Part shown: positions 7,561 to 57,212 of the stretch, piece after piece | How the letters are laid out: each line of letters opens with the position of its first letter | How positions within the stretch are numbered: position 1 is the first letter of the stretch | Source: Anaeramoeba ignava BMAN | Taxonomy: Eukaryota; Protista; Anaeramoebae | NCBI GenBank assembly: GCA_028826165.1 | Contig: JAPDFW010000125.1 | Coordinates: forward strand, 868,001-932,000 | Direction: 5' to 3' | Length of the DNA: 64,000 nucleotides | Notes under the pieces: model-generated | Databases searched by the model: none | What the model was told of the DNA's origin: nothing | Seen by the model: only the letters and a program-made list of their open reading frames with translations | Program-made: the position numbers and the translations under genes

Positions 7561-7645
7561 TTTTAAAAAGAAAAAAATGAAAAAATAATTTTAAATTTTA
7601 ATTTTGATTTTAATTTTAATTTTAATTTTAATTTTAATTTTAATT

Positions 7646-9409
7646 TTAATTATTAAATTTTTTAATTAATAAATCAAATAAATTTGGATTTGTTTGATTT
7701 AATTGAAAATAATCAATTCCAATTTCTAATTCATCAATTATTTCTTGTGTAATTTGAATTTCATCTTTAATTTGATTTGAATAAATCCAATATTCAAATA
7801 TTTGAAATGATTTATTACTTAATTCACTATAATCTGTAACTTTATTAGAAGTATCATTTGTTACAGATAAAAACATTCCTCGATATAATTCACTTCTCAT
7901 TATTAATATTAATTTTGGAAATTTATATTTCTTTTCTTTTCTTTCAATTATAAAATCTTTTTCATTTTCATTTTCATTTAAATAAATTCTTTTCATTGTT
8001 TCTTCAATTTTTTCATTTGAATTTATAATTTCTTTAATTTCAGAATATAATTCTGGATTTATTATTCTGTTTGAATAAATCATTTCAAATATTTGATTTG
8101 ATTCTTTAATTGATTTTTTTGAAATAATTTCTTGAAGTTTTTCAATTTGATTTTGATTTTGTTTTAATCTATATTTCAATATTAATTTATGAGCTTTGAT
8201 TATTTCTCCATTTTTTGTTTTAAATGAAATATCACAAAATTCTTTTCTTCTAAATAGTTTTATCAAATCTTCTTCAAGATTGGAATAAGAAGGAGGAGAA
8301 TAATAAAGAAATGATCTTTGATTTGCACAAGAAATATGATAATTAGAAATATTTTCATTAAATCTTAATTTAGGAAGTTCAATTTGAATTGGAATTAATT
8401 GATTATTTGTATCTCCAGTTCCTAACTGACTATAAGAATTATTTCCAAATCCAATTAATTTTGATTTGGAAGTTAAAATCAAAGTATGTTCATGCCCAAT
8501 AGAAAAATCAAGAATATTATCATCATTTTCAAATAAAGATGATTTGATTTCAGTAAATTCATAAGTATTTTCATTTTTGCCAAGTCCATTATATTGATAA
8601 TCTCCACATGAATAAAGTTTTCTTTTTGGATTTTCATTTTCATTTTCAATTAACATTATTGAATGAGACATTCCACATTGAATATCAATTATTTTGCCTT
8701 TTGGAATATTTTGGATTTTGGTTAATTTTTGGATTGTTTCTTTTCTTGATTTTCCTAATCCAAGTTGACCATTTCTATTATTTCCGCATCCAAATAATTC
8801 TTGATTTGAATTTAAAAGAAAAACATGATCTGAAGAATTTCCTGAAAATATTTTAGAAACATTTTTCATCATTAAAATTGGTTTATCTGTTTCTTCAAGT
8901 GTTTCAGAATCAAAACCAAGTTGACCATGATCATTTGAACCAATTCCATAAGCATTTTGATTTGAAGTTAATAAATAAACTGCGCAATATCCAGAAGCAA
9001 TATCTTTGATTACTCTATCATTTGTATCTTCAATTAATGATGAAATATTGATGATTTTAGATGTATCAATATCTTTTCCTTGAGCAAATACATTTCCTTC
9101 TTTTGTTAAAATAGCTTCATTTCCCTCACCAGAAGTTACTTTTTGAATATTTTCTTCAATTTGGATTTTTGAAGGATTTTGATTTGAATCATTTTCATCT
9201 AAATATTCTACTGCTTCACCATTTTTAAAAAGGAAAAATGCTGCAAAATAACCTGCTAAAACTTGTTTAATTTGTTTTTCATTTTCATTTTCATTTTCAT
9301 TTTCATTTTCAAATTTAAGTTTAAATTGAATTGGTTTTGTTATTATATCTGGTTTATTTTCGATAAGTTTTGGCATTATATTTTCACCAAAATATAAAAC
9401 TTCATTCAT
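7646..9409 (-). CDS. RCC1-repeat + BTB domain protein, copy 2 (intact, intronless, 587 aa)
   Basis: RCC1 repeats (GSNDHGQLG, GNNRNGQLGLG, GNNSYSQLGTG) followed by BTB-like motifs (FCDISFKT...AHKLILKYR; ILIMRSELYRGMF...FEYWIYSN). Confidence 0.9.
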   Translation of the reverse strand: MNEVLYFGENIMPKLIENKPDIITKPIQFKLKFENENENENENEKQIKQVLAGYFAAFFLFKNGEAVEYLDENDSNQNPSKIQIEENIQKVTSGEGNEAILTKEGNVFAQGKDIDTSKIINISSLIEDTNDRVIKDIASGYCAVYLLTSNQNAYGIGSNDHGQLGFDSETLEETDKPILMMKNVSKIFSGNSSDHVFLLNSNQELFGCGNNRNGQLGLGKSRKETIQKLTKIQNIPKGKIIDIQCGMSHSIMLIENENENPKRKLYSCGDYQYNGLGKNENTYEFTEIKSSLFENDDNILDFSIGHEHTLILTSKSKLIGFGNNSYSQLGTGDTNNQLIPIQIELPKLRFNENISNYHISCANQRSFLYYSPPSYSNLEEDLIKLFRRKEFCDISFKTKNGEIIKAHKLILKYRLKQNQNQIEKLQEIISKKSIKESNQIFEMIYSNRIINPELYSEIKEIINSNEKIEETMKRIYLNENENEKDFIIERKEKKYKFPKLILIMRSELYRGMFLSVTNDTSNKVTDYSELSNKSFQIFEYWIYSNQIKDEIQITQEIIDELEIGIDYFQLNQTNPNLFDLLIKKFNN

Positions 9410-9444
9410 TTTTAAAAAAGAAAAAAATGAAAAAATGAAAAAAA

Positions 9445-11525
9445 TTAAAACAATTTTCTTGATTTTTTGATTTTGACTTTTTTTCCAATTTGGTAAATTT
9501 CTTTCAACATTCTAAAGTAATATTTGCTTCTAAAGAAATTCAAATATTGGTCATTTGACATGAGTTCATAAATTTGTTTTTCAGCAGCATCAAATAATTG
9601 AGGGTTTGGAATTCTTCTAATCTTTTTTAACTGCTGAGCAATTCTTCTTCTAACATCACCTGAAATATTGACTTGTTTGTTTGATTCATCCTCAATAAAC
9701 GTTTGCGATATCAAATTCGCATAACGGATTGCAATTTCATTCTCTCCCAAAATGCATAATTGTTTGAACTTATTCACACTGAACCAAAATAGTACGTTTT
9801 CTTCATTATGTTCATTTGATGAAAATTCAACTAAATATTTCATATATCGATCAATAAAAATTTGCAACTCAAACAAAATGGATGATTCGGTTAGATAAAT
9901 CATCTCGTTTTTGAGATTGCTATTATTATGAGTGCCGCTGTTGCTATTTTTCCTTGGATTTGATTTCCTCGAACTATTTCTTTTTTGATTCTGTTTTTTA
10001 TGTCTTTTTTTTCGCTTTTTTTCTTCCATCACTTTTTTCTCTCTTTCCTTTTCTTCCTCTTCAAGTTGCCTTAATATTTCCGCTTGTCTCATCATTTCGT
10101 TTGGATGATCACTTTGGATTTCATATTGTTGATTTAATTTTCCTTGTCGATTTCCAAATGGTTCTTCATACGAAAAAAACCGATTTTGATTTTTGAAAAA
10201 TGATTGAGACGTGCTTAACGAAGTTTGGAGCGGTTGCGGTTGCGGTTGGATTTGGGGAACGCGAAAACTAAACGTCTTCGCAAAATTCGACTGCGTTGCT
10301 TTAAACTCTTCCGCTTTGCTTTTGTCTCGATCGATTTTTATTCTGTCTAATCGAAGAGACAATACTCTTGATGGTCCTTGTTGGATTTGCTTTTTTTTCA
10401 TTGATCTGAATAACGACCAAACTGAAAATCTCTTTTTCATTTGAACTGGTTTTTTCGGTGTTGTGTTTGCTTTTTTCGGTCTTGTTTTTTTTGCCGTTTT
10501 TTTCGGCGTTTTTTTGGTATTTTTTTTTGACGTTTTTTTTCCGTTATTTTTTGGTTCTTCTTTTTTTTCCAAATTTTCCTTTTTGATATCTTGATTATTC
10601 ATTTTGACTTCATTTTTTGTTGGTTTTTGTTCATTTTTTTCAGTAGATTCATTGTTTTTGAACTGGTGAATAATATTTGTAACATTTGATAAAGGTGAAA
10701 TATTTCTTGTTTTTTTTTTGCGTTCTAAAAAAAAGTTTTCATTTACAGATTGATTTTTTTTGAGTTTTTCTTTTAGTTTTTCTTTTGGTTTTTCTTTTAT
10801 TTTTTTCTGTTCATTTTTTTTTGGTTTTTTCTGTTCATTTTTTTTTGTTATTCCAACTTTTTGTTGAAAAATGGAAAGAATAATATTTTCTTTGATTTCT
10901 TGACATCTTGTGTCTAAAATTGGTTTTAATTTAAATTCTTTATCTTTTTTATCAATATTTCCATCAGTTCTTTTTTAATTTTAAATTGATTTTAATTTTT
11001 AATTTATAAATTAATTTTAATTTATTCTTTTTTTTTTTTTTTTTACTGTTTAAATATTCTTTGAAGATCTGGATGTTTTGAAGCTCCAATTTTAGAATTT
11101 AGTATAAAATTTAAACTAATTGATCTTTTGGCTTTTTCAGGTTTTGATTCAAGAACGACTTTTTAATTAAAAAATCAATTTAAAATTTTTAATTCAAAAA
11201 ATTTCAATTCAAAAAATTTTTAATTCGAAAAATTCTTAATTCGAAAAATTCTTCGTTTTTTTTTACCTTCTTCCCATTGTTGTTTGCTATTTTCAATTGG
11301 TTTTTCATTCATTTTCTTTCGTGTTTTTTCCATTTCTTCTATTTTTTGTGATTTTTGTATTTTTTCTTTTTTCTCAATTTCAATTTGTAATTTTTTTATA
11401 ACTAAATTTTGTTCTGTATTTTCTTTTTGTAATTTTCTTAATTTTTCAATAAGTTCTTGTCTTTTTTTTGAAATTGCTATTTGTTTTTTGATAAAATTTG
11501 AATTGAATTGATTTTTTAAATTCAT
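9445..11525 (-). CDS. RGS (regulator of G-protein signalling) domain protein with N-terminal coiled coil; 3 exons
   Basis: C-terminal RGS motifs (EHNEENVLFW, VNISGDVR, LFDAAEKQIYELMSNDQYLNFFRSKYY). The 11220..11525 ORF splices (GAA G|gtaaaa; aag|TC GTT CTT; CA|gtaaaa; aag|A ACT at 10969) into a frame that I read as open and continuous with the 9445..10602 ORF. Confidence 0.8.
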
Positions 11526-11604
11526 TTTATTTGATTAAAAGAAAGTGAAAAAAAAAAATGAATTTGAAAAAAATGAATTTTAAAAAAAATTTGGAAAAAT
11601 GATT

Positions 11605-13510
11605 TTAAATGAAATGAGTCTCAAGTTCATCAACAACCCATTTATAATAAGAACCAGCTAAATAACTCTTTGCTTCTTTTGATCCTTGTATAATTCCATT
11701 AGGCAGATTATAAGTAGCTCCAAAATTCGAATAACCAGGTTGTAAATTAGAATTTAAGGAAAAATCTGCTTCTCCAAAATAAGTTCCCCAATCTTTATTA
11801 TAAAAAATAGCTTTGGTTTCCTTTGTGTTTTTGATTGGGAATTTTTCTGGTTTGCGATCTCCTTTATCATTTCTTAATGAGAAAATAAATGCATTTGAAT
11901 CACGAATGAAATCTTGAGGAAAAGTATGTAATCTTGAATATTTTGATTTATCTTTTGTAAATCCAACTTCAGTAAATCCTCCAAAAATATAATTATCTTT
12001 TGTTTTGATAATAACTAATGTTTTTCCTTTTCCATCACAAATATCATGCCATTTATAACAATCAAATCCATCTCTTTTGGCTGAAAATCCTTTTTTCATT
12101 TTAAAAAAGAAATCATCATCATTTATCCACTCTCTTAATTTCTTAGCATATTCAATATCTTGAATAATTTCTGAATCTGAAACAAAGGGAGTTGTTTGAT
12201 CATTGGATTCGGTCTCTTTTTCTTTGCCAAATCCTGACATCAAATTTTGGATCAACTCATTTTGCTCTTCAATATCGTCATATTTCGATCCCAATTCATA
12301 TAATAATTTTTCATTTTCCGATTTTAAATTTTCATTCTCCTTTTTTTGTTTTTCATTTTCAGATTTCAGATTTTCATTTTCAGATTTCAGATTTTGATCT
12401 TGATTTTCTTTGATTTTTTTCATTTTCTTCCTTTCTTTCCTCAAATGATGATTTAAGATTTTGAATTTCTTCCTCTTTTTGTTTCAGGATCTTCTCTTTA
12501 TTCTCCTTTCTTTGTTTTTCATTTTCAGATTTCAAATTCATAATTTCCTTTCCTTGTTTTTCAATTTCCTCTTTTTGTTTTTGATTTTCTGATTCAAATG
12601 ATTTGATTCTTTTATCTCTTCTTTCAATTTTCTTTTCTTTCTCTTGAATTTGTTTATCTTTTTGATTGATTCTCTTTTCCTTTTCTTGATCTTGAATTTC
12701 AAAAATAGTTCTTTCAAAATTAATTAAAAAAGAATTTGGAAGAAAAAACTCGAATTGATTTAATTTATCAAAATCTTGTTTTGAAATTGAATCTTTATCA
12801 AATAATGAAAAAAAAGAATGAAATAATCTTTTCTTTGCATTCGCTTGGTTCTTAAATTTCCTTAATCTTAATGATTCAACTCTTTTCTCAATCCAATTAT
12901 TTAAAAATTGAAAAAAATCAAATTGAAAAATTTCTTTTTTTTCTTGTTTAAATTGAATAAATTTGATAATTTCTTCTTTAGTTAAATTGAATAAATTCTC
13001 ATTATTCTGAATTTGGGAAAAATTTTGATTTATTAATTCAAAACATTTCATCTCAATTTCTTTTAATTTTAAATTTCGATTTTGGAATAAAAATTGGAAA
13101 AAATTTGAATAATTAATTGAATTTGAAATTTTTTTTTGAATAATTTCTTTCAATAAATTTAATTTAAAATAAATTGAAATTTCCAATAATTCGAGAAGAT
13201 TTTCTTTATTCTCAAAAGAAATATTTCCATAATAAATATAACTCAAAATTGATTCCATTTCTTTTTTATTAAATTGATTTAAAGAAATAGAAAGAGATTC
13301 TTGCCTTAAAAACTTATTAAAAAAAGGAGATCTTGAACATAAAATTGATTTATGAACTTTAATTTCAAAAGGATTTGATTTATTCTCAACAAAAATTGAA
13401 AAATCTTTAAATGAATTTTCTTTTAAAAGGTTTGAATAATCTTCAATTAAATTTTTTGTTACTTTTTTTTCTAAATTTTTCATTTCGTTTTCATTCTTAT
13501 TCTTCTTCAT
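11605..13510 (-). CDS. BTB/BACK-like + coiled-coil + TLDc domain protein (intronless; +1 frameshift at ~12414-12420)
   Basis: BTB motif (FKDFSIFV...VHKSILCSRSPFF) and TLDc motifs (FSAKRDGF...CDGKGKTLVIIKTKDNYIFGGFT...VDELETHFI) lie in two overlapping ORFs. Removing one A from a 7-A run joins them. Confidence 0.8.
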
Positions 13511-13676
13511 TTTTGTTTTTAAAAAGAGAAAGAAAAATGAAAAATAAAAAATAATTAATTAAATTAAATAAAAAATTAAATAAAAATTAATTAAAGGAAG
13601 GCAAAAAAAAAATGAATAAAAAAAGTGGATTTTGAAAATAAATAAAAATATTGAAATGAGAATAAATCTAATATTC

Positions 13677-13922
13677 AAAACAATAAATTATTATTTCAAT
13701 AATAGAATTAAATATTAAATTATATTTTTAAATTAATTTATAAATTAAATATTAAATTAAAGTTATTCTCATTTTTTTATATTTTTATGTTTAATATTTA
13801 AATAATAAAAAATTTAATTCTAAAACAATAAATTATTATTTCAATAATATAATTAAATATTAAATTATATTTTTAAATTAATTTATAAATTAAATATTAA
13901 ATTAAATCTATTCTCATTTTTT
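13677..13922. repeat. Direct repeat of ~100 bp with ~145-bp period (intergenic)
   Basis: aaacaataaattattatttcaataat...taaattaaatattaaattaaa..tattctcatttttt occurs at ~13677 and ~13822. Confidence 0.7.
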
Positions 13923-13956
13923 TTATTTTGATTATGGAAAATTTGAAAAAATGATT

Positions 13957-14112
13957 TTAAATGAAATAAGTCTCAAGTTCATCAACAATCCATGATTTAT
14001 AAGAACCAGCTAAATAACTTCTCGCTTCTTTTGCTCCTTTTTGAATTCCATCAGGCATATTGTAACTATAACCAAAATCAGAGCAACCAGGTTGTAAATT
14101 AGAATTCAACCA
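13957..14112 (-). pseudogene. Truncated 3' remnant of a TLDc gene (last ~50 codons)
   Basis: Reads WLNSNLQPGCSDFGYSYNMPDGIQKGAKEARSYLAGSYKSWIVDELETYFI*, paralogous to the end of 11605..12444, including its 3' flank. Upstream it runs directly into an (AAAATT)n tract with no start codon or AG acceptor. Confidence 0.8.
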
Positions 14113-14371
14113 AAATTAAAATCAAAATTAAAATTGAAATTTAAATTAAAATTAAAATTAAAATTAAAATTAAAATTAAAATTAAAATTAAAATTAAAAT
14201 TAAAATTAAAATTAAAATTAAAATTAAAATTGAAATTAAAATTAAAATTAAAATTAAAATTAAAATTAAAATTAAAATTAAAATTAAAATTAAAATTAAA
14301 ATTAAAATTAAAATTAAAATTAAAATCAAAATTAAAATCAAATTCATTTTTTCATTTTTTTCTTTTCAAAA

Positions 14372-16136
14372 ATGAATGAAATTTTATTTTGGGGTGAAAA
14401 TGATCCAATTCTTTTCAAAAATGAAGAAGAAAAAATAAAAAAACCAATTCAATTTAAATTTGAAAATGAAAATGAAAATGAAAATAAAAAACAAATTAAA
14501 CAAATTTCATCAGGAGGTTTCTCAACAATTTTCCTTTTTAAAAATGGAAAAGCAATAGAATATTTATATGAAAACGATTCAAAACAAAATCCTGAAAAAA
14601 TCCAAATTGAAGAAAATATTCAAAAAGTAACTGTTGGTGATGATAATGAAGCTATTTTAACAATAGAAGGAAATGTATTTGCCAAAGGAGAATATATTAA
14701 TCCAAAAAATCCAAAATAAATTTATCAATATTTCATCATTAATTGAAGATACAAATGATAGAATAATTCAAGATATTGTTTCTGGAGATCGTTCAATTTA
14801 TTTATTAACTTCAAATCAAAATGCTTATGGAATTGGTTCAAATAAATATGGTCAACTTTGTTTTGATTCTAAAACACTTAATAACACACAAAAACCAATT
14901 TTAATGATGAAAAATGTTTCTAAAATATTTTCAGGAAATACTTCATTTCATGTTTTTCTTTTAAATTCAAATCAAGAATTATTTGGATGCGGAAATAATA
15001 GAAATGGACAACTTGGATTAGGAAAATCAAGAAAAGAAGAAACAGAAATCCAAAAATTAATCAAAATCCAAAATATTCCAAAAGGCAAAATAATTGATAT
15101 TCAATGTGGAATGTCTCATTCAATAATGTTGATTGAAAATGAAAATGAAAATTCAAAAAGAAAACTTTATTCATGTGGAGATTATGAATATAATGGACTT
15201 GGCAAAAATGAAAATACTTACGAATTTACTGAAATCAAATCATCTTTATTTGAAAATGATGATATTATTGATTTTGATAGTGGAAATAGACATACTTTGA
15301 TTTTAACATCCAATTCAAAATTAATTGGATTTGGAAATAATTTATATGGTGAATTAGGAACTGGAGATACAAAAGATCAATCAATTCCAATTCAAATTAA
15401 ACTTCCTAAATTAAGATTTAATGAAAATATTTCTAATTATCATCTTTCTTGTGGAGATTACAAATCATTTTTTTATTATTTACCTCCTTCTTATTCCAAT
15501 CTTGAAGAAGATTTGATAAAATTATTTAGAAGAAAAGAATTTTGTGATATTTCATTTAAAACAAAAAATGGAGAAATAATCAAAGCTCATAAATTAATAT
15601 TAAAATATAGATTAAATCAAAATCAAAATCAAATTGAAAAACTTCAAGAAATTATTTCAAAAAAATCAATTAAAGAATCAAATCAAATATTTGAAATGAT
15701 TTATTCAAATAATTCCAAAATAAATCCAAAATTATATTCTGAAATCAAAGAAATTATAAATTCAAATGAAAAAATTGAAGAAACAATTAAAAGAATTTAT
15801 TTAAATGAAAATGAAAATGAAAAAGATTTTATAATTGAAAGAAAAGAAAAACAATATAAATTTCCAAAATTAATATTAATAATGAGAAGTGAATTATATC
15901 GAGGAATGTTTTTATCTGTAACAGAAGATACTTCTAATAAAGTTACAGATTATAGTGAATTAAGTGATAAATCATTTCAAATATTTGAATATTGGATTTA
16001 TTCAAATCAAATTAAAGAAGAAATTCAAATTACACAAGAAATAATTAATGAAATTCAAATTGGAATTGATTATTTTCAATTAAATCAAACAAATCCAAAT
16101 TTATTTGATTTATTAATTAATAAATTTAATAATTAA
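14372..16136 (+). CDS. RCC1-repeat + BTB domain protein, copy 3 (intronless; +1 frameshift at ~14713-14716)
   Basis: Two overlapping ORFs (14372..14719 and 14673..16136) together match copies 1 and 2 end to end. Extra A in cca AAA taa a. Confidence 0.8.
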
Positions 16137-39624: not shown

Positions 39625-42600
39625 ATGGATAGCCTTTCATCACAAGAAGAATTAAAAGAAAGTGATATAGAAAAACCAAAAAAAGAAACTGAAAATTTAA
39701 ACGAAAATGAAATTGAAAATGAAATTGAAAAAGAAAATTCACAAGAAAAACCAGAAAAAGAAACTGAAGAACAAAAAAAGAAAAAATATTGGGATCGAAG
39801 TAAAATTCGAAGAATGAGACAATTAATGAAAGAAAAACGATTTGAAGTAATGATTCAAGCGTTTACATCTTCATTGAAAAGAATATTAATTCCAGTTTCA
39901 ATAACGATGATATTAACTGTTATTTTGATTAAAACTTTATATTCAGATCAAACAATGAATAATCAATTTCAAGATGTTTCAGTGTATAATGAAAACTCTT
40001 CTGATTCTGGTGGTAAAAAGTTCGCTGGTTCTCTTTTAAATGCTTTGATAATTGTTGGTGCTATTGTTGTTATGACTTTTCTTATTGTCCTTTGTTTCAA
40101 ATTTGGTTGCATGAATTTGGTGTTTGCTTATATAATCTTTTCCACTTTTATCATGTTAGGGATTATTGGTGCTGTGACTTTTATGTAATTATAATAAAAA
40201 AAAATTTTTTTTCATTTCAACAAAAAATTTCAACAAAAAATCAAATTAAATTTTATTTAATTAAATTTCATGTTAAAATATTATTTAATTAAATTTCATT
40301 CCAAAATATTATTTAATTAAATTTCATTCCAAAATATTATTTAATTAAATTTTATTTAATCAAATATTATTCCAAATTTTATTTAATTAAATTTAATTCC
40401 AAAATATTATTTAATTAAATTTCATGTTAAAATATTATTTAATTAAATATTATTTAATCAAATTTCATGTTAAAATATTATTTAATCAAATATTATTTAA
40501 TTAAATTTATTATTTAAAATATTATTTAATTAAATTTCATTCCAAAATATTATTTAATCAAATTTCATTCCAAAATTTTATTTAATTAAAATATTACTTA
40601 ATCAAATTTCATTCCAAAATTTCATTTAAAATATTATTTAATTAAATTTCATTCCAAAATATTATTTAATTAAATATTATTTAATCAAATTTCATTCCAA
40701 AATATTATTTAATCAAATTTCATTCCAAAATATTATTTAATAAAATATTACTTAATCAAATTTCATTCCAAAATATTATTTAATTAAATATTATTTAATT
40801 AAATTTCATTCCAAAATATTATTTAATTAAATATTATTTAATCAAATTTCATTCCAAAAATATTATTTAATTAAATATTACTTAATCAAATTTCATTCCA
40901 AAATATTATTTAATAAAATATTATTTAATAAAATTTCATGTTAAAATATTATTTAATCAAATATTATTTAATTAAAATTCATGTTAAAATATTATTTAAT
41001 AAAATTTCTGTTAAAATATTATTTAATTAAATTTCATTCCAAAAATATTATTTAATCAAATATTATTTAATTAAATTTCATTTAAAATATTATTTAATTA
41101 AAATTTCATGTTTAAAATATTATTTAAAAATATTATTTAATTAAATTTCATTCCAAAATATTATTTAATCAAATAATTATTTAATAAAAATATTATTTAA
41201 TCAAATTTCATTCCAAAATATTATTTAATAAAATATTATTTAATTAAATTTCATTCCAAAATATTATTTAATCAAATTTCATTCCAAAATATTATTTAAT
41301 CAAATATTATTTAATCAAATTTCATTCCAAAATTTTATTTAATAAAATATTATTTAATAAAATTTCATTTTAAAATATTATTTAATCAAATATTATTTAA
41401 TTAAAATTTCATGTTAAAATATTATTTAATAAAATTTCATTCCAAAATATTATTTAATCAAATTTCATGTTAAAATATTATTTAATTAAATTTCATTCCA
41501 AAATATTATTTAATCAAATTTCATTCCAAAATATTATTTAATCAAAATATTATTTAATTCAATTTCATGTTAAAAATCGTTTTCTCTTTTATTAGTGAAC
41601 TTCTTGTTGCTGAAAATCTTGGTATGGATTGGCTTTCTTTTGTTATTTTTATGTTGAATTTTGCAGTTGTTGGTGTTACAGTTATTTTTTGGAAAGGACC
41701 TGAAATTTTCAATAAAATGTATTTAATTGCTGTCAGTGTACTTGTTGCAAAGGTTTTTGCTTCACTTCCTGAATGGACTGCTTGGATTCTTCTTGGTGCA
41801 ATTGCTATTTGGGGTTTGAATTTAATTTCCAAAAAACAAATTCTATTTTTAATAATTTTAATTTTAATTTTAATTTTAATTTTAATATTAAATTTTTCAG
41901 ATATTTTTGCTGTTTTATCTGCTCGTGGTCCTTTAAAAGTTTTAATTGAAACTGCTCAACAAGAAGATAAACCTATTGCTGGACTTCTTTATAATTGTAA
42001 TTTATTTTTTTCAATATTTAATATTCAATATTTAATTCAATTCAATATTCAATTCAATTCAATATTTAATTCAATTCAATATTTAATTCAATTCAATTCA
42101 ATTCAATTCAATATTCAATTCAATTCAATTCAATTTAATATTTAATTCAATTTAATATTTAATATTTAATTCAATTCAATATTTAATTCAATTCAATTCA
42201 ATATTTAATATTCAATATTCAATTCAATTTAATATTCAATATTCAATATTCAATTCAATATTTAATATTCAATTCAATATTCAATTCAATTCAATTTCAA
42301 TTCAATTCAATATTTAATTCAATTATTTTATATTTATTCAATTCAATTCCAATATTTAATATTCAATATTCAATATTCAATTTAATATTCAATTCAATTC
42401 AATTTAATATTTAATTCAATTCAATTTAATATTTTAATTCAATTCAATATTTAATATTTATTCCAATTCAATTCAATTATTCAATATTCAATTCAATTCA
42501 ATATTCAATTCAATTCAATATTCAATTCCAATTCAATATTCAATTCAATTCAATATTTAATATTCAATTTCAATATTCAATATTCAATTTAATATTCATT

Positions 42601-44064
42601 TAATATTAATATTTAATATTAATATTCAATTTTATTCAATAATATATTTAATATTCAATATTCAATATTCCATTTTATTCCAATTCAATTCAATATTTAA
42701 TATTCAATTCAATTCAATATTTAATATTTAATATTCAATTCAATTCAATATTTAATTCAATTCAATTCAATATTCAATATTTAATATTCAATTCAATATT
42801 CAATTTTAATAAATTCAATATTCAATTTAATTCAATATTTAATTCAATTCAATTTAATATTCAATTCAATTCAATATTCAATTCAATATTTAATATTCAA
42901 TTCAATTCAATATTCAATTTCAATATTCAATATTCAATTCAATATTCAATTTATTCAATTCATTATTCATATTCAATTTAATTCAATTTAATTATTTAAT
43001 TCAATTTAATATTTAATATTTAAATTTAATTATATTTAAATTTAATTCAATTCAATATTTAATATTCAATTCAATTCAATATTTAATATTCAATATTCAA
43101 TTCAATATTCAATTCAATATTTAATATTTAATATTTAATTCAATTCAATTTAATATTCAATTCAATATTCAATTCAATTCAATATTTAATTCAATTCAAT
43201 TTAATATTCAATTTAATTCAATATTCAATTCAATTCAATTTAATTCAATAAATTAGCAAGTCTTTATTTTGAAAATGATTATGATAATGATGATAATGAT
43301 AATGATGATGAAAATTCAGATAAAAATCATGAAAGTTCATCAGATAAAGATCACAAATTTGTTGATAATCCATATTCAACAAGTTCAGATGAAGACAATT
43401 TTGAAAATGATACAAATCAACCCAAAAAAAATGAAGAAATTGAAAATAAAACTGAAGATAATAATGAAACAAAAAAGGAAGATCAAGATGATGATTTGAT
43501 TAAAATTCCAAAAGAAGTTTTTCCAGAAAGGAAAAAAAGACCTGAAACTAAAAAACCAGGTTTTTTTCTTTATAATTTTCAAAAACAAAATCAAAAAAAA
43601 TATTCAAAAACAAAAACAAAAACAAAAACAAAAACAGAAAAAGTTCAATATCAATATCAATATGAAGATGAAGATGAAGGAGGTATTAAATTAGGTCTTG
43701 GTGATTTTATTTTTTATAGTGTTTTAATTGCAAAAGCTTCTTTAAATGATTATTCAACTGTATTTACTTGTTTTATTGCAATTTTAACTGTAAATTTTAA
43801 ATTTTAAAAAAATCAAAAAATTTATTTGCTTTTTTTTATTTAAATTTTAAAAAAACAAAAAATTTATTTGCTTTTTATTATTTAAATTTTAAAAAAATCA
43901 AAAAATAGGGTTTATCTTTAACTTTATTCTTTTTAATTGTTTACCAAAAAGCTCTTCCTGCTTTACCAATTTCTATTTCTTTTGGAATTATTTTCTATTT
44001 TCTTACAAAATTGGTTTTGGATCCTTTTATTGAACAACTTGGAAATTCAAGTGTTTTTGCTTAG
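39625..44064 (+). CDS. PSEN: Presenilin (gamma-secretase catalytic subunit), 5 exons
   Basis: [22 protein letters not shown]|DIFAVL..RGPLKVL (first catalytic Asp), [15 protein letters not shown] (GxGD), [10 protein letters not shown] (PAL motif). Confidence 0.95.
40240..41570. repeat. Intronic minisatellite (aaatttcattccaaaatattatttaatc/t)n
   Basis: Presenilin intron 1. Confidence 0.9.
42010..43250. repeat. Intronic (ATTCA/ATATTCA)n satellite
   Basis: Presenilin intron 3. Confidence 0.9.
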
Positions 44065-45633: not shown

Positions 45634-45943
45634 AATTCTTTAATTAAATAAAGATTTAGAATTTCTTTTAAATTTTTGATCAAATTTTGATTAAATTTTT
45701 AATTAAATTTCTTTTAAATTTTGACCAAATTTCTTTTAATTTGATCAAATTTAATTTGATTTAATTTAGATCGCAGTTTATTTTCAGAATTCCTTTTTAA
45801 AATTGATGATTTGGAAAAAAATTTTGTTAAAAATTAAAAATCATTTTTTTTCTTTTTTAATTTTATTTTTTCTCATTTATTTTCTCATTTATTTTCTCAG
45901 TTATTTTAGTGAAAGTTTTTTTTTTATTGAATTGAGAATTCAA

Positions 45944-48900
45944 ATGACAAATTTAGAAAATCAAAATAATTTTGGAAATGTTGAAAATTTTGGAAATGTT
46001 GAAAATTTTGGAAATGTTGAAAATTTTGGAAATGTTGAAAATTTTGGAAATGCTAATGATTTTGGAAATGCTAATAATTTTGGAAATGCTAATGATTTTG
46101 GAAATGCTAATAATTTTGGATTTGGTGATACTCAATATGTTTCTGATATGCCAACTGGTAATTTGGGTGTTGATGGTGCTAATGGTGTTGATGGTGTAGA
46201 TGGAATAGAAATGGGTGCTTTATCTCCTCAACCTCCTCCTCATTCAAATACTAAACCTATTAAAAATGATGGAACTGGACAAAGTTATACTAATTCTGGA
46301 GGTTAGTCCTGCAAATTCAAATTCAAATTCTAATTATAATTCTAATTTTAATTTTAATTCTAATTCTAATTCATAATTCTAATTTTAATTCTAATTCTAA
46401 TTTTAATTCTAATTCAAATTCTAATTTTAATTCTAATTTTAATTCTAATTCTAATTCAAATTCTAATCCAAATTTAAATTCTAATTCTAATTCAAATTCT
46501 GATTTTAATTTTAATTCTAATTCAAATTCTAATCCTAATTCTAATTCTAATTCTAATTCCAATTCTAATTCTAATTCAAATTCTAATTCTAATTCTAATT
46601 TTAATTCTAATTCTAATTTTAATTTTAATTTTAATTTTAATTCTAATTCTAATTCTAATTCTAATTCTAATTCTAATTCTAATTTTAATTTTAATTTTAA
46701 TTTTAATTCTAATTCTAATTAAAATTCTAATTCTAATTTTAATTCAAATTCAAATTCCTAATTTTAATTCTAATTCTAATTCAAATTTAAGCTTATGATG
46801 GTGGTAGTTCAACTTCAGTTTCTAATTTTAATTTTGTAATTTAAGCTTATGAGTAATTTTAATTTTGAATCTTTAATTTTAATTTTTAATTTTGAATCTT
46901 TAATTTTAATTTTTAATTTTTAATCTTATTCCACTTTTTTTTTTACTTTTATTGATAAATTAGTGATGGATGGTATTGATAAATAATTTAAAAAAAATAT
47001 TCAATTTATTTCAAAATTTATTAATTCCTTTTTATTTATTTATATTATTTTCAAAAAATTTTTTGTGATTATTATCAAAATTTAGTTGTGATTGTTGGTA
47101 AGTTTTTATTTTAAATATTTGGAAATTTTCATTTTATTCCACTTTTTTTTTTACTTTTATTGATAAATTAGTGATGGATGGTATTGATAAATAATTTAAA
47201 AAAAATATTCAATTTATTCAAAAATTTATTAATTCCTTTTTATTTATTTATATTATTTTCAAAAAATTTTTTGTGATTATTATCAAAATTTAGTTGTGAT
47301 TGTTGGTAAGTTTTTATTTTTTATTCCACTTTTTTGGATCATATTAATAAATTAATTTAAAAAAAAATAATCAATTTATTCCAAAAATTTATTAATTCCT
47401 TTTTATTTATTTATATTATTTGGAAAATTTTTTGTAATTGATTGTGATTATTATCAAAATTTAGTGGAGATTGTTGGTAAGTCGTTATTTTTGAAATAAT
47501 TTTATTTTATTCCACTTTTTTAATTCCACTTTTTTTTTTACTTTTATTGATAAATTAGTGACAGATGGTATTTAGAAATAATTTAAAAAAAAATAATCAA
47601 TTTATTCCAAAAATTTATTAATTCCTTTTTATTTATTTATATTATTTGGAAAATTTTTGTAATTGATTGTGATTATTATCAAAATTTAGTGGAGATTGTT
47701 GGTAAGTCGTTATTTTTGAAATAATTTTATTTTATTCCACTTTTTTAATTCCACTTTTTTTAATTTTATTTAGTGAAGACTTTTGGTAAAATATTTTCAT
47801 TCCAAAAAAAAATAATTTCAATATTAAAAATATTTATTTATTTATTGTTTTATTTTCTGATTATCTCTGAATACAACTTTTTTTTAGGAGTTGCAAGTAA
47901 GTTTTTGCTCTTTTTTTTTAAACAAAACATTTTTTTTTAATTTCTAATTACTTTTTTTTAGTTGCCTGTAAATATTCTCTTTTTAAAAAACAAAAATTGA
48001 AATTCATCTTTTCATTCCAATTTTAAAAATTTTATTTAATTAATTATTTTCATTTTATTTAGTAATTGCGAGTAATTTAATTTTAAAAAATTTGATCCAA
48101 AAATAGAATTTAAATTTTTTAATTTTAATTTTAATTTTAATTTTATTTGTTATTTAGTACTTGCGAGTAATAATTTTATTTTAAAATTCTTCAATTTAAT
48201 TAATAATTTTAATTTTTTTTATTTTCATTTTATTACTTTCTTATCAATTTAGATGTTGTGGAGGGTAAGTATTTTTAAATATTAATTAAAGAAAACTAAA
48301 ACTAAAACTAATTTTGAAATTTATCTTTTATTTATTTAGATTTTGCGAGTAATTTTTTTATTTTAAAATTTTTTTTTGAATTTTCCCTAATTCCACTTTT
48401 TTTTTCTGTTAAAATTTTTCTTTTAATGAATTTAGTTCTTGTGGAAAGTAAGTATTTTTTTAAAAATTGATTAAAGAAAACTAAAACTAAAACTAATTTT
48501 GAAATTTATCTTTATTAATTTAGATGTTGCGAGTAATTTTTCTATTTTAAAATTCTTCAATTTAATTAATAATTTTAATTTTTTTTATTTTCACTTTATT
48601 ACTTCTTATCAATTTAGATGTTGTGGAGGGTAAGTATTTTTAAATATTAATTAAAGAAAACTAAAACTAAAGCTAATTTTGAAATTTATCTTTTATTTAT
48701 TTAGTTGTTTGCAGTAATAATTTCTTTTTTAAATTTTTTTTGAATTTTCCCTAATTCCACTTTTTTTTAAAATATTAATTTAGATGTTTGGAGTAAAAAT
48801 TTTCATTTTAATTAATTTTATTTTAAAGAAAACTAAAAAACCTTTATTCTTTTTATTATTCTTATTATAAAAAAATAAAAATTCCTTTCTTTTATTAATT

Positions 48901-49096
48901 TAGTGCTTGCGGGTAATTTATTAATTAATTAATTAATTTATTCAATTCATTTTTTGATAATTCATTTTTGATAATTTTTTAGAGAGTAAATTAATTTCAT
49001 TTTCAATTTTCATTTTAATTTTCAATTTAATTTTTATTTTTAATTTAATTTTCATTTTAATTTTTAAAATATAGTTGTAATTGTTCAATTTTTTAA
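45944..49096 (+). CDS. Micro-exon gene A: FGN-repeat N-terminus + Cys-rich tail + CaaX (predicted 196 aa)
   Basis: Exon 1 45944-46301; 7-nt exon 46846-46852; 21 AG/GT-bounded micro-exons starting at 46964(9 nt), 47086(12), 47172(9), 47294(12), 47465(12), 47559(9), 47690(12), 47774(12), 47888(9), 47962(6), 48063(9), 48158(9), 48253(12), 48340(9), 48436(12), 48524(9), 48618(12), 48705(9), 48784(9), 48904(9), 48983(3); last exon 49075-49096. Tail: AYDDGCCDCCDGCCDCCGDCCDRCGDCCEDFWSCNCLNCDTCECCGGFCDSCGKCCECCGGCLQCLDACGDCNCSIF*. Confidence 0.8.
45971..46120 (+). repeat. Coding 18-nt tandem repeat x8 (FGNVEN/FGNAND/FGNANN)
   Basis: Directly visible in exon 1 of micro-exon gene A. Confidence 0.9.
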
Positions 49097-49616
49097 GTTT
49101 TATGATCCAAAAATAAAGGAATTTAGGATCGTATTTGGCTTCAATTCTCAAGCAAAATCAAAATCAAAAATAAAATTAAAATCTAATTTTAATTTTAATT
49201 TTAATTTTAATTTTAATTTTAATTTTAATATTTAATTCCTTATTCAATTCTTTCATTTTAAAGAGATCAAAACAAAAAGAGTAAAAGAATAAATGGAGGG
49301 ATTATCTCAATTACAATTTTTCTTCTAAAATAATTATGAAATTTATTTCTTAGATCTCTTCAAAAAAAAAGAAATAAAAAAATAATGATTCTTATTAAAT
49401 TAATCCATTTAACAACTTTTTGCTTTTGTTTCGTTTGATTTCCTATTAAAAAAAAATGAGATCAAAAATATTTGAAAAAATGGCAAATAATTTTTTTTTT
49501 TGGCATTTTGATGAAAGGATTTTGATGAAAGAATTTTATTTGAGTTCATTTTTTTTTTTCTAAATTATTTTTGATTTATTTAGTGAAACAATTTATTTTT
49601 TTTTTCAATTAAAATT

Positions 49617-52600
49617 ATGCAAGGAAATAATAATAATATTATTCCACAAACAAACCCTGCAATCAATCAATTTATGCCTCAACCTCAACCTCAAATTATG
49701 CCTCAAGCTCAATTTATGCCCCAAGCTCAACCCCAAATGATGCCTCAAACTTTTTCACCTCAAATTACTACTCCAGTTGATCCAAGTATGACACCTAATC
49801 AAAACCCAAATGTTTTAGCTCAACATAATCAAGCTCATTCAAATCTAGGCAATACTGGAGGAATGGGTGGTGGTGGTACTGGACAATCTTATGTAAATTC
49901 AGGAGGTAATTAAATATTTAATATTCAAATAAATATTCAAACAAATATTTAATATTCAAATAAATATTCAATATTCAAATAAATATTCAATATTCAAATA
50001 AATATTCAATTAAATATTCAATTCAATATTCAAATAAATATTCAAATTAATATTCAAATAAATATTCAAATAAATATTCAAATAAATATTCAAATAAATA
50101 TTCAATTAAATATTCAATTAAATATTCAATTCAATAAATATTCAAATAAATATTCAAATAAATAATCAATTCAAATAAATATTCAAATAAATAATCAATT
50201 CAAATAAATAATTAAAATAAATATTCAAATAAATATTCAATTAAATATTCAAATAAATATTCAATTCAATATTCAATTAAATATTCAAATAAATATTCAA
50301 ATAAATATTAAATATTCAAATAAATATCCAAATCAATTGAATTAAATTGTGATCATTTTTTTTGGTTTTGATTTTTCTTTTAGTTTATGATGGAGGCAAT
50401 GATTGTTGTTGTTGTTATTGTTATTGTTGTGCTTGCAAGTAAGTTATTTTAAATTAAATTTTCAAATATGTTTTTAATTTTGTTTTAATTAATTTTATTT
50501 TTATTTTTTTTAGTGGAGATCCGTAAAGAAAAAAAAAATTTTTTTTTCTCTTCTTTGAAAAATTAAAATTAAAATTAAAATTAAAAATTAAAATAGTGTT
50601 TTTGGATGGTAAAAACAATTTTTTTTTTCCTTCTTTATTGAAAAATTTTTTTTTTGTGAAATTTCTTCAATTTTCTACTTTTTTTTTCTTTTCTTTTATT
50701 TATTAAATATTCCTTTTTAATTTCAAAATAGTAATTGTGGATTGTAAGTTTTTGTTTTTTTTTTAAAGAATAAAAATAATTAATTTACTGATTTATTAAT
50801 TTAAATTTCTTACTTTAAAAATTTAAAATTAAAATAGATGTTCTTGTGGGTTAGTTCTTATTTTTTTTCTAAATCTTTTTTTCTATTTTCTAAAATTTAA
50901 ATAATTTTATTTTAATTATTTAACAAAAAAAAATATTTAAATTTCAGCGATTGTAATTGGTAATTAGTTCATTTGATTTTTTTTTTGATTAAAAAAAAAT
51001 AATTTAAAATGTTCCACTTTTTGTTCCACTTTTTTTTAAAATTATTTGCAAAAAAAAAAAATTAAATTTTAATTTAGTGATGGATGTTGGTAAGTTATAT
51101 ATTTAATTTATTATTTGATATATTTATAAATTTAATCATTTTTATTATTTTCTTCTTTTTTTTTTAAATAGTCATCGATGGTAAATTTCTTTCATTTCCT
51201 TTTTCAAAAAGAAATAATAAATAAAAATCATTTTCAAATTCATTTTTCAAATTAATTTTATTATTTGGAAATTAAGTGGTATTTGGTGGTAAGTTAATAG
51301 AAAAAATACAAATCCAAATCTTTTTCTAATTAATTCCAAATTTGATTTCAAAATTAAATTAATTCAAATTAGTGATCATTGTTTGTAAGTTAATCGAAAA
51401 AAATTAATTCTAAATCTTTTTTCTAATTAATTCCAAATTTAATTTCAAAATTAAATTCATTCAAAATTAATTGAAATTAGTGAAAATTGTTGGTAAGTTA
51501 ATTAAAAAAAAAAACTAATTTCCAAAATGAATAAAATGCAAAAAATTTTTATTCCACTTTTTTATTAAAATCAAAATAAATTAGTTACGGATGGTAAATT
51601 TTAATTTGAATTTTTTATTTCTTATTTATTAAATTGAATTTATTTTAATTTAAATTTCTTTTTGAAATTTATTATTTGAAATTAGTAATGCTTGTGGGTA
51701 AGTTAATTCAAAATCAAAAATAAAATTTTCTAATTAATTTTTTTATTCCACTTTTTTTTTTATTTATTCCACTTTTTAAGTCAATGCTGGTAAGTTATTT
51801 ATTTCTTTTTTTAATAAATATTAAATTTAATTATTTATTTATTTTAATTTTTTGAAATCAATTCAATTAGTCAAGGATGGTAAATTATAATTTTATTTTT
51901 TATTTCTGTTTTATTAAATTAAATTAATTTCTTTTTGAAATTATTTCAAATTAGTGATACTTGTTGGTAAGTTAATTTAAAATTTAATTCAAATTTGAAT
52001 TTAATTATTTATTTATTTTAATTTTTTAAAATCAAATTAATTAGTCAAGGATGGTAAATTATAATTCTATTTTTTATTTCTTATTTATTAAATTAAATTA
52101 ATTTCTTTTTGAAATTATTTCGAATTAGTGATGCTTGTTGGTAAGTTAATTTAAAATTAAATTCAAATTTGAATTTAATTATTTATTTATTTTAATTTTT
52201 TAAAATCAATTCAATTAGTCAAGGATGGTAAATTATAGTTCTATTTTTTATTTCTTTTTTATTAAATTGAATTAATTTTAATTTAAATTTCTTTTTAAAA
52301 TTTATTATTTGAAATTAGTGATGCTTGTGGGTAAGTTAATTTAAAATTAAAAATAAAATTTTCTAATTAATTTTTTTGTTCCACTTTTTTTTTTATTTAT
52401 TCCACTTTTTAAGTCAATGCTGGTAAGCTATTTATTTCTTTTTTTAATAAATATTAAATTTAATTAATTATTTATTTTAATTTTTTAAAATCAATTCAAT
52501 TAGTCAAGGATGGTAAATTATAATTCTATTTTTTATTTCTGTTTTATTAAATTGAATTTATTTTAATTTAAATCTCTTTTTGAAAATCAAAATAAATTAG

Positions 52601-53126
52601 TCAAGGATGGTAAGATAAAATTTTGATTTAATTTAATTTAATTTTGATTTGATTCGTTTTTATTCCTTTTTTAATTCCATTATTTTTTAGTGATTGTGGA
52701 GGATGGTAAGTTTAAATTTTAATTTAATTTTATTTCAAATTAATTTGATTTATTTTTTATTTATTTTTTTAGTAATTGTGGAGGATGGTAAGTTTAAATT
52801 TTAATTCTATTTTATCTCTCATTTCTTTTTTCTTATTTCTTTCTATTTTTTTTAAATTCCATTATTTTAGTGATTGTGGAGGATGGTAAGTTTAAATTTT
52901 AATTGAATTCTCATTTTTAATTAATTTATTTTATTTTTGATTTTATTTTTTTTAGTGATTGTGGAGGGTAATTTTTTTAGATTAATATTTTGATTTGATT
53001 TTATTTTTGGATTGAAAAATCCACAAAAAAAAAAGTGGAACAAAATCAAAAAAAATTTTTTTTAAATCAAATTTTTTTTTTCTTTTTTAAATAATAATTG
53101 ATTAATTTAGATGCACAATTAATTAA
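49617..53126 (+). CDS. Micro-exon gene B: Pro/Gln/Met-rich N-terminus + Cys-rich tail + CaaX (29 exons, predicted 216 aa)
   Basis: Exon 1 49617-49905; exon 2 50384-50438; 26 micro-exons starting at 50514(9 nt), 50597(12), 50732(12), 50838(12), 50948(12), 51078(12), 51172(9), 51277(12), 51373(12), 51481(12), 51585(9), 51686(12), 51781(9), 51871(9), 51955(12), 52045(9), 52129(12), 52219(9), 52319(12), 52414(9), 52504(9), 52601(9), 52691(15), 52773(15), 52871(15), 52956(12); last exon 53111-53126. Tail: VYDGGNDCCCCYCYCCACNGDPVFGCNCGLCSCGDCNCDGCCHRCGIWCDHCFENCCYGCNACGQCCQGCDTCCQGCDACCQGCDACGQCCQGCQGCDCGGCNCGGCDCGGCDCGGCTIN*. Confidence 0.88.
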
Positions 53127-53390: not shown

Positions 53391-55770
53391 ATGGCTAGAG
53401 GACCAAAAAGACATTTAAAAAGATTAAACGCACCACATAAATGGATGTTGAATAAACTTGGTGGAAGATATGTGTGTTTTACAAATAAAAATCAATATAA
53501 ATTTAAATTTTAATTTAAATATCAATATAAATTTCAATATAAATTTCAAAATCAATTTCAATATCAATTTCAAAATCAATATCAATATCAATATCAATAT
53601 CAATATCAAAATATAATATTAATATCAATTTCAATATCAATTTCAAAATATAATATTAATATCAATTTCAAAATATAATATTAATATCAATTTCAAAATA
53701 TAATATTAATATCAATTTCAAAATATAATATTAATATCAATTTCAAAACAAATTAATATAATTATAAATATAAATTTCAAAATCAATTTCAATATAAATT
53801 TCAAAATCAATTTCAATATCAATTTCAAAACAAATTAATATAATTATAAATATAAATATAAATATAAATATAAATATAATTATAAATATAAATCTCAAAA
53901 TCAATTTCAATATCAATTTCAATATCAATTTCAATATCAATTTCAATATCAATTTCAATATCAATTTCAAAATAAATTTCAATATCAATATCAATTTCAA
54001 AATCAATTTCAATATCAATATCAATATCAATATAAATATCAATTTCAATATCAATATCAATTTCAATATCAATATCAAAATATAATATAAATATCAATAT
54101 CAATTTCAATATCAATTTCAAAATATAAAATCAATTTCAAAATCAATTTCAAAATATAATATAAATATCAATTTCAATATCAATTTCAAAATATAATATT
54201 AATATCAATTTCAAAATATAATATTAATATCAATTTCAAAACAAATTAATATAATTATAAATATAAATTTCAAAATCAATTTCAATATCAATTTCAAAAT
54301 CAATTTCAAAATCAATTTCAATATCAATTTCAATATAAATTTCAATATCAATATCAATTTCAAAATCAATTTCAATATCAATATCAATATCAATATAAAT
54401 ATCAATTTCAATATCAATATCAATTTCAATATCAATATCAAAATATAATATAAATATCAATATCAATTTCAATATCAATTTCAATATCAATTAATTTCAA
54501 AATAAATTTCAAAATAAATTTCAATATAAATATCAATATCAATTTCAATATCAATATCAATATCAATTTCAATATCAATTTCAATATTAATTTCAATATA
54601 AATTTCAATATCAATTTCAAAAATATAAATATAAATATAAATTTCAATATCAATTTCAAAATATAATATTAATATCAATATCAATTTCAATATCAATATC
54701 AATTTCAATATCAATTTCAATATAAAATATAAATATTAATATAAATATAAATATAAATATAAATATAAATATAAATATAAATATAAATATAAATATAAAT
54801 ATAAATATAAATATAAATATAAATATAATTATAAATATAAATATAAATATAAATATAAATCTAAAAATAAATATAAATATAAATTTAATTAAATTTAATT
54901 AATTATCTTTTTTATTAGGCTCCAAGACCTTCAACAGGTCCACATAAATTAAGAGAATCTTTACCTTTAATTATTCTTCTTAGAAACAAACTCAAATATG
55001 CATTAACAAGTCGAGAAGTTATGCTGATTCTCAAACAAAGACTTGTCAAAGTTGATGGAAAAGTTAGAACAGATTCAAATTATCCAGCAGGATTTATGGG
55101 TTAGTTTTGAATTTTAATTTTTTAAATTAAAAATTTATTTATTTATTCATTTTAATTTTTAAAAATATAGATGTTATTTCAATTGAAAAAACAAATGAAC
55201 ATTATCGTTTATTATATGATACAAAAGGACGTTTTTTCATTCATTCAATTCCACAAAAAGAAACAAAAGTAAAAAATATTTATTTTAAATATTTAAATTT
55301 ATTTTATTTAATTTTAAATATTTATATTTTATTAGTTCAAACTTTGCAAAGTTAAAAAAATCCAACTTGGACAAAAAGGAATTCCATTCCTTATTACAAA
55401 TGATGGAAGAACAATTAGATATCCAGATCCACTTATTAAAGCTAATGATACAATTAAACTTGACGTTACAACAGGCAAAATTACAAATTTCTGCAAATTT
55501 GATATTGGAAATTTAGTAATGGTCACAGGAGGAAGAAACACAGGCAGAATGGGAGTAATTACAAAAAGAGAAAAACATCAAGGATCATTCGATATTGTTC
55601 ATATTAAAGATGCTAAAGGTCATGACTTCGTTACTAGAGCTACTAATGTCTTTGTTATTGCTAAAGGAAAAAAACCTCTTATTTCAATCCCTAAAGATTT
55701 TGGAGTTAAATTATCCATCATAGAAGAAAGAGATAAAAGACTGGAAAAATCTCAAAAGAAGAAAAAATAA
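53391..55770 (+). CDS. RPS4: 40S ribosomal protein S4 (eS4), 4 exons
   Basis: [20 protein letters not shown]...|[17 protein letters not shown]...[15 protein letters not shown]|DVISI...[12 protein letters not shown]...[11 protein letters not shown]. Confidence 0.97.
53490..54900. repeat. Intronic (ATATCA/ATTTCA/ATATAA)n satellite with higher-order duplication
   Basis: RPS4 intron 1 (53472-54918). Confidence 0.9.
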
Positions 55771-56296: not shown

Positions 56297-57212
56297 ATGA
56301 CCACGTCAACTCATTTAAATTTTGGAAACAATCCAGAAATATCAAGTTATTTACAACAAATGATTTTTCCAACAACACCACTTAATAACAATTTATCTGA
56401 TCTCAAAAACAATACAAGAAGAAACATGCCCCCAACAAAACAAGTTTCACATTCACATTCAAATTCAAATTCAGCAATTGTCAATGCCTTATCACAAATG
56501 AAAGACACTGGCAGGTCACATAAAGTAACAAATCCACAAGTTTCATTGGCATTGACAGAACCAGTAGCAATTCCAGTTAATATGGCAGTGACATTACCAG
56601 TACAACAAGTTTCTTCAAGATTTGGAACAGTTAATTTTCCAGTTGTTCCAAATAATGTTTCACCACAAAATCCACAAAAAGAAAGATATAAAACGGAAAT
56701 GTGTCGTTCTTGGGAAGAAACTGGTACTTGTAGATATGGTTCTAAATGTCAGTTTGCACATGGTTATCATGAATTAAGGTAAAAAATTTTAAAAAAAAAA
56801 AAAGGAAAAAAAAAATTTAATTAAAAAAAAAGGGGATAAATAAAAAAAAAACACGAATTCTTTTGTTTTAAAAATAAATTACATTGACATTAACAATAAA
56901 AATACCTTTTTATTTTAACAACAACTTTAAACAAAAAAAACAACAATTCTCAATTTATTTTTTTATTAATTTTTTTATTTAATTTTTTTATTTAATTTTT
57001 TTAGACCAATTCTAAGACATCCAAGATATAAAACTCAAGTCTGTAAATCTTTTCATGAAAATGGTTTTTGTCCTTATGGAAAAAGATGTAGATTTATTCA
57101 CAGTTTTATTGGTTCTCTTCCTTTTTCTTCTCAACAACCTCAATTTCAAGAAATCAAAGATGATTCAATTAAAAGATTACCAGTTTTCGAAAAACTTGCT
57201 CAATCTAATTAA
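56297..57212 (+). CDS. Tristetraprolin/ZFP36-family tandem CCCH zinc-finger mRNA-decay protein, 2 exons
   Basis: [30 protein letters not shown]|[32 protein letters not shown], plus a C-terminal RLPVF motif like the TTP CNOT1-binding site. Confidence 0.92.

Follow-up and report, generated by a model that had tools for sequence, protein, structure and literature searches.

This study concerns two adjacent genes, here called A and B, in a stretch of 64,000 nucleotides (nt) from Anaeramoeba ignava (C115:868001-932000, hereafter the window; positions below refer to it unless a contig is named). A. ignava is a free-living anaerobic metamonad with an AT-rich assembly of 42.8 Mb in 147 contigs. In both genes, as modelled, a Cys-rich protein tail is assembled from a long series of exons of 3 to 15 nt. 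Gene A has 24 exons at 45944-49096 (coding sequence of 591 nt, product of 196 amino acids), and gene B has 29 exons at 49617-53126 (651 nt, 216 amino acids); both lie on the plus strand. Their parts are as follows.

45944..46301, plus strand: gene A exon 1, 358 nt, phase 0-1; encodes an Asn/Gly/Phe-rich low-complexity N-terminus without Cys, contains an 18-nt repeat in 8.7 copies and ends with the motif GQSYxNSG
46302..46845, plus strand: gene A intron 1, 544 nt; a hexamer repeat covers most of it (46314-46787), and an alternative acceptor lies at 46792
46846..46852, plus strand: gene A exon 2, 7 nt, phase 1-2; the least certain exon
46964..48985, plus strand: gene A array, first part, as start (length): 46964 (9), 47086 (12), 47172 (9), 47294 (12), 47465 (12), 47559 (9), 47690 (12), 47774 (12), 47888 (9), 47962 (6), 48063 (9)
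46964..48985, plus strand: gene A array, second part: 48158 (9), 48253 (12), 48340 (9), 48436 (12), 48524 (9), 48618 (12), 48705 (9), 48784 (9), 48904 (9), 48983 (3)
49075..49096, plus strand: gene A last coding exon; CaaX box CSIF, then stop
49617..49905, plus strand: gene B exon 1, 289 nt, phase 0-1; encodes a Gln/Pro/Asn/Met-rich N-terminus without Cys, with the end motif as in A
50384..50438, plus strand: gene B exon 2, 55 nt, phase 1-2; YD motif and 8 Cys
50514..52967, plus strand: gene B array, first part: 50514 (9), 50597 (12), 50732 (12), 50838 (12), 50948 (12), 51078 (12), 51172 (9), 51277 (12), 51373 (12), 51481 (12), 51585 (9), 51686 (12), 51781 (9)
50514..52967, plus strand: gene B array, second part: 51871 (9), 51955 (12), 52045 (9), 52129 (12), 52219 (9), 52319 (12), 52414 (9), 52504 (9), 52601 (9), 52691 (15), 52773 (15), 52871 (15), 52956 (12)
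53111..53126, plus strand: final coding exon of gene B; CaaX box CTIN, then stop; matches the final exon of gene C (contig C35, described below) at 15 of 16 nt

The array of gene A contains 21 micro-exons of 3, 6, 9 or 12 nt, with introns of 65-159 nt between them; that of gene B contains 26 micro-exons of 9, 12 or 15 nt, with introns of 67-143 nt. All 47 are bounded by AG and GT, are multiples of three (3n) and are symmetric in phase 2-2. Ahead of them, exon 2, of 7 nt in gene A and 55 nt in gene B, moves the frame from phase 1 to phase 2. Micro-exons make up about a third of the coding sequence in A and 45% in B. The joined frames contain no internal stops. Cys accounts for 30 of the 77 residues after exon 1 in A and for 45 of the last 113 residues in B, where 8 of the 45 are encoded by the ordinary 55-nt exon 2, outside the micro-exons; 26 Cys codons span junctions (7 in A and 19 in B). 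The original prediction for this locus, which had proposed 47 such exons building stop-free Cys-rich tails that end in CSIF and CTIN, thus agrees with our results in exon positions, phases and Cys counts.

Exon 2 is the weakest link in gene A, in that an identical 7-nt sequence follows the upstream acceptor at 46792, where there is also a resemblance to gene B exon 2; no in-frame phase-2 donor follows this acceptor ahead of a stop. The interval 46792-46852 can be described as a duplicated exon-2 start, in which use of the upstream acceptor with the normal donor would lead to a stop before any Cys.

The GC content of the micro-exons is 41%, compared with 12% in the introns, and 38 of the 44 internal TGY triplets lie in the predicted frame (p=5e-13). 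A mechanical exon rule was set in advance, and 242 kb of other DNA from the A. ignava genome served as background. Over 6.4 kb of array, the rule returned 43 candidates on the plus strand and 3 on the minus strand; the background yielded 0.61 per kb per strand, making the array 11-fold denser. The candidates were 3n in 41 of 43 cases in the array versus 85 of 297 (29%) in the background, and the two exceptions, the 7-nt phase-shifting exon and the start of the last exon of A, are both expected from the model. When exon order was shuffled, only 3% (A) and 6% (B) of the orders were stop-free; the actual order is stop-free in both genes. The donor GTAAGT was found at 22 of 51 sites. The introns of the neighboring RPS4 and presenilin genes have the same splice sites and measure 67-119 nt; the GT-AG introns of neighboring genes are either short, as in these measurements, or long with simple AT repeats, and the long kind resembles intron 1 of A and B. 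On these grounds, it is very probable that A and B are spliced as modelled.

The micro-exon introns (46850-53110) contain 17 copies of the hexamer TTCCAC, out of 27 on the plus strand of the whole window. The hexamer mostly lies 25-49 nt ahead of an acceptor; some copies are owed to duplications, and it is possibly a branch-point or splicing signal.

A third family member, gene C, was reached with a relaxed micro-exon pattern. It is NCBI M0811_04704, located on the minus strand at C35:625134-626582. Its exon 1 is of phase 1 and ends in the QS-x-NS motif common to A and B; exon 2 (phase 1-2) carries YD and is followed by phase 2-2 exons of 3, 102, 12 and 21 nt, and the last exon, nearly identical to that of B as noted above, ends in CTIN. 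Because the exon-1 end motif, the phases and the last exon agree, gene C is assigned to the same family as A and B. The NCBI model lacks the 3-nt exon but is otherwise the same as ours. A EukProt protein derived from transcriptome data agrees with our model over its first 59 and last 56 residues, and the latter agreement indicates that the 3-nt, 12-nt and 21-nt exons are spliced in. The proposal that an independently evolved micro-exon gene family exists in this protist is thereby strengthened by a further gene with transcript support. As the original prediction had also supposed, the family appears to be undescribed: no micro-exon genes in Anaeramoeba were found in the literature searched, the coverage of which was incomplete.

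Further searches added no members. A relaxed form of the exon-1 end motif gave 12 matches in the genome, including A, B and C (control, 4), and the other nine have no such exons downstream. Genome patterns built on the exon-1 end motif, the micro-exon motifs and the CaaX last exon likewise returned only A, B and C, so that the family counts at least three genes. No relatives were found outside A. ignava when A and B were searched exon by exon, in searches that are weak for low-complexity pieces, and no homologues were found of exon 1 of A or of the A/B exon-1 alignment. The products of A and B, including exon-1 read-through, were absent from the protein collection searched. Pfam gave no match at E<=1 for full-length C, for exon 1 of A, B or C, or for single exons, and a structure atlas offered no usable match (its gene C model has a pTM, the predicted template modeling score, of 0.10). 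The family, in which A and B are tandem paralogues, is small and has been seen to date in A. ignava alone; in the public proteome of this species, genes of this kind are either absent or wrongly spliced.

RNA evidence for A and B came from one public run, whose type is not on record. In this run, 73% of the words sampled from 45900-46320 (gene A exon 1) were present. Reads were also placed on 48770-49915, a region picked so as to leave out the long simple repeats in intron 1 of each gene; the placement left out the repeats at 48909-49239 and 49360-49397, and hence the 3' end of A. A single contig of 163 nt was obtained (depth 3, 49708-49870), which lies wholly within exon 1 of B. An exon-1-only contig is consistent with a shallow RNA run.

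The arrays consist of whole intron-plus-exon units in tandem, with 77-99% identity.

46918..48768, plus strand: gene A tandem duplications; periods of 208 (97%), 225 (99%) and 185 (78%)
51597..52975, plus strand: gene B tandem duplications; period of 174 (88-94%), a 300-nt block that appears again 633 nt later (94%), and periods of 82-98 at the 3' end

The tails of A and B grew as units of about 80-225 bp, each comprising an intron and a micro-exon, were duplicated in tandem, with only frame-keeping 3n, phase 2-2 units persisting. Since the frame survives the duplication or deletion of a unit only with a symmetric 3n exon, the symmetry of the array is explained without alternative splicing. 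Diversifying selection, in which exons would change faster than introns, was also considered; among duplicated units, which share 93-99% identity, exon and flank changes were 8/72 versus 36/586 in A (p=0.13) and 2/60 versus 21/516 in B (p=1), and no significant excess was found. Gene C carries a comparable tail mostly within one 102-nt exon, which may reflect intron loss in C or, in A and B, expansion from a small number of short exons.

The three proteins follow one plan: a disordered, Cys-free head encoded by exon 1; a hinge consisting of QS[YF]xxNS, a phase-1 intron and YD; an acidic Cys/Gly/Asp tail; and a CaaX box on its own last exon. The heads measure 64-124 residues. Cys makes up 32-42% of the tails, which are acidic and rich in Gly, contain 1-6 aromatics and 9-10 CC pairs each, and show CC and CxxC spacing. 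In A and B, the maximum hydropathy was 0.83 and 1.02 over 19 residues and 0.04 and 0.34 over 7 residues at the N-terminus; these values give no sign of a signal peptide or membrane helix. The earlier description of the N-termini as lacking both Cys and a signal peptide therefore stands.

A C-terminal prenyl anchor had been proposed as well, and several lines of evidence point to it. The endings CSIF and CTIN, terminal C-x-x-x sequences of the type accepted by FTase or GGTase-I, each scored as prenylated in yeast screens (PMC9231725, S1 File), three prenyltransferase beta-subunit loci are present in the A. ignava genome, and four Ras-like GTPase genes of A. ignava, identified by eye, end in a basic stretch followed by CSIL or CSIM. 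In addition, each of the three genes retains the CaaX end, encoded by a last exon of its own. Prenylation of A, B and C at the CaaX box is thus likely, judging from sequence features. The products would be prenylated there and would probably carry S-acyl groups on some of the Cys close to the anchor, so that 30-45 thiols would be displayed on the cytosolic face of the membrane, most likely as a trap for soft metals (Zn/Cu/Cd). This role is the best guess because 30-45 thiols exceed the needs of lipidation and because of the analogy with the tail of rice DEP1; that metal binding is the main role has, by our estimate, close to an even chance.

With regard to splicing, the AT-rich introns of 65-159 nt, similar to the ordinary introns nearby, would be removed by intron definition, with all the tiny exons normally retained and one main protein formed per gene. 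Under intron definition, exon size is of little consequence and skipping is rare. Short introns and strong donors would favor this mode, and mainly constitutive inclusion appears to be a reasonably good expectation. The exon layout, the unit duplications, the third member with transcript support and the presence of prenyltransferases are observed. Taken as a whole, the reading in which A and B undergo constitutive splicing and encode thiol-rich proteins that are prenylated, tethered to a membrane and probably trap metals is held with about even confidence.

Several observations speak against this reading. No read or contig of the RNA run crosses an A/B junction in 48770-49915. The transcript-derived protein of gene C has 9 residues where exon 2 of the genome gives 3, and these were not found in the assembly, so that either alternative exons are in use or the genome or transcript assembly contains an error. 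They may stem from an alternative exon absent from the genome sequence, from a different allele or paralogue, or from wrong assembly of the transcript. (The possibility that they derive from a corrupted island in intron 2 of gene C was tested and not supported.) The similarity of the head of C to those of A or B was not significant by shuffling. None of the 21 single skips in gene A creates a stop, and skipping would be tolerated there. Finally, A. ignava possesses classical metallothioneins, a tandem intronless Lys-rich pair with 47 Cys in about 153 amino acids (C115 at about 158-160 kb, minus strand). The tails of A, B and C align with them no better than composition would give (z 0.1, 1.5 and -1.0), and both points weaken a pure metal-buffer role.

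The main rival to a metal trap is a scaffold or trafficking signal resembling the CYSTM/CYSPD proteins, in which a low-complexity cytosolic head would be held at the membrane by prenylation and multiple S-acylation, and in which Cys would serve lipidation or redox/sulfide chemistry. The combination of a Pro/Gln-rich (B) or Asn/Gly-rich (A) head with a Cys-rich C-terminus suits such a protein, as do the CC pairs, of which the amoeba's metallothionein has none; yeast CYSTM proteins bind membranes via palmitoylation (PMC10840359). However, CYSTM domains contain 5-6 Cys versus 19-45 here, 30-45 thiols are more than an anchor requires, and the complete gene C protein has no Pfam match. We regard this alternative as possible but the less likely one.

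Variable skipping of the micro-exons, as in the micro-exon genes (MEGs) of schistosomes, would instead yield many tails differing in length and Cys spacing, and the original prediction had envisaged such combinatorial diversification. Besides the tolerance of gene A to single skips, this is suggested by the symmetry of all 47 micro-exons, by the 95% of gene A isoforms that stay open at 50% inclusion, by the exon-2 segment of the C transcript, which is unlike the genome model, and by the two exon-2 starts of A. Against this, the symmetry is accounted for by duplication alone; only 44% of gene B isoforms stay open at 50% inclusion, and a single skip of exon 5 or of exon 28 of B gives TGA. Where an exon ending in TG meets one starting with A, TGA results, in 48 of 253 possible skip joins in A and 20 of 378 in B. 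Moreover, the one transcript-derived protein of the family, from gene C, retains every downstream exon, and the short introns and strong donors point to intron definition. The diversification claim is thus not supported so far, and variable skipping is rather unlikely. Within it, skipping of exon 28 of B, which joins TG to A and places a stop just before the CaaX box, could act as a switch from an anchored to a soluble form. The fullest version, an independent MEG-like diversifier in a free-living protist, in which skipping ladders of thiol-rich tails would differ in metal or lipid capacity and the prenyl anchor would be switched by this skip or by an alternative exon 2, is doubtful. A reading in which exon 1 alone is expressed, and the islands represent an error of assembly or duplicated DNA that has decayed or lacks function, is very improbable: no A/B junction was seen in RNA, the sole contig ends within exon 1 of B, and the products are missing from the protein collection, but all 47 micro-exons are 3n, Cys triplets are in frame, the order is stop-free, the CaaX ends are intact, the duplicated units show graded divergence, and a spliced sister gene has the same layout.

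Neighboring genes in the window include RCC1-BTB, RGS, RA-domain and exportin-T genes (Pfam). A cluster of genes with RCC1 repeats and BTB, together with one RGS gene and one BTB gene, occupies 5727-16136 (Pfam). Upstream of gene A, a presenilin gene was recognized by eye at 39625-44026, with two introns of more than 1.2 kb of simple AT repeat; downstream of gene B, ribosomal protein S4 with a 1.4-kb repeat intron (53393-55770) and a tandem CCCH zinc-finger gene (56298-57211) were also recognized by eye. Tandem gene repeats occur elsewhere in the genome, at C5:33-42 kb (unit of about 4.5 kb), C2:439-443 kb (about 3.9 kb) and C35:627-636 kb (3-4 kb).

With 21 and 26 successive coding exons of 3-15 nt, the arrays exceed the 10-20 exons of schistosome MEGs, and A and B offer a compact test of how the spliceosome keeps many tiny exons ordered. 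They are also a clear case of repeat protein growth by duplication of intron-plus-exon units, with a sister gene that has one 102-nt exon. The amoeba hosts sulfate-reducing symbionts, and its undescribed family of thiol-rich and probably prenylated proteins may bear on the handling of metals or sulfide at membranes.

Among known systems, the CYSTM/CYSPD proteins (yeast Cpp1-3, rice CDT1; PMC10840359) are similar in being small, in having a low-complexity head and a Cys-rich lipidated C-terminus, and in their links to metal tolerance. They differ in having 5-6 Cys in a short C-terminal motif and S-acylation without a described CaaX box, and their Pfam domain was not matched by full-length C or by single exons at E<=1. 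Modular metallothioneins, such as TmMT of Tremella (PMC4755600), AcMT1 of Agaricus (PMC12508003) and OdiMT2 of Oikopleura (PMC8283569), share with A and B a Cys content of 30-40% in CC/CxC/CxxC and frequent mis-annotation; metallothioneins extend through internal duplication of exon and intron (PMC12508003, PMC8283569), as in these genes, but the exons of TmMT measure 63-105 bp (PMC4755600) versus 3-15 nt here. The tails of this family, at 32-42% Cys, have the roughly 30% Cys in CC/CxC/CxxC that is typical of metallothioneins. However, a metallothionein is a wholly Cys-rich chain with few or no aromatics and no extra domains, whereas A, B and C have a Cys-free head, aromatics and a CaaX box. 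The A. ignava pair itself is Lys-rich, with CxC spacing and without CC, aromatics, head or CaaX, whereas the A, B and C tails are acidic and Gly-rich with aromatics; this difference in spacing and charge indicates that the family is not those metallothioneins. The links to CYSTM proteins and metallothioneins drawn in the original prediction are therefore resemblances only, given the lack of a Pfam match for the pieces or for C and the dissimilarity to the amoeba's own metallothioneins.

Plant proteins offer design analogies only. The Cys-rich tail of the rice G-gamma protein DEP1, to which the long Cys-rich tails here are similar, gives Cd tolerance and was proposed to be a Cd trap (PMC3808331), and HIPP metallochaperones combine metal-binding thiols with isoprenylation (PMC10459601). 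A, B and C contain no G-gamma or HMA domain according to Pfam (exon 1 of A, B and C, and full-length C).

The closest likeness in gene structure is to the schistosome MEGs, which gene finders likewise miss and in which longer terminal exons flank a set of very short symmetric 3n exons; these hold much of the coding region in MEGs, compared with about a third in A and 45% in B. All MEG products have a signal peptide, being either secreted or anchored at the surface (PMC4350168); the MEGs are flatworm-restricted, with introns of 0.1-5 kb, 10-20 exons and documented alternative splicing (PMC4350168, 10.1101/2023.06.21.545858). In contrast, A and B belong to a free-living metamonad, lack a signal peptide and any sequence link to the flatworm genes, and have a CaaX end, introns of 65-159 nt and 40% Cys. 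In sum, A and B are not members of the MEGs but are MEG-like by convergence.

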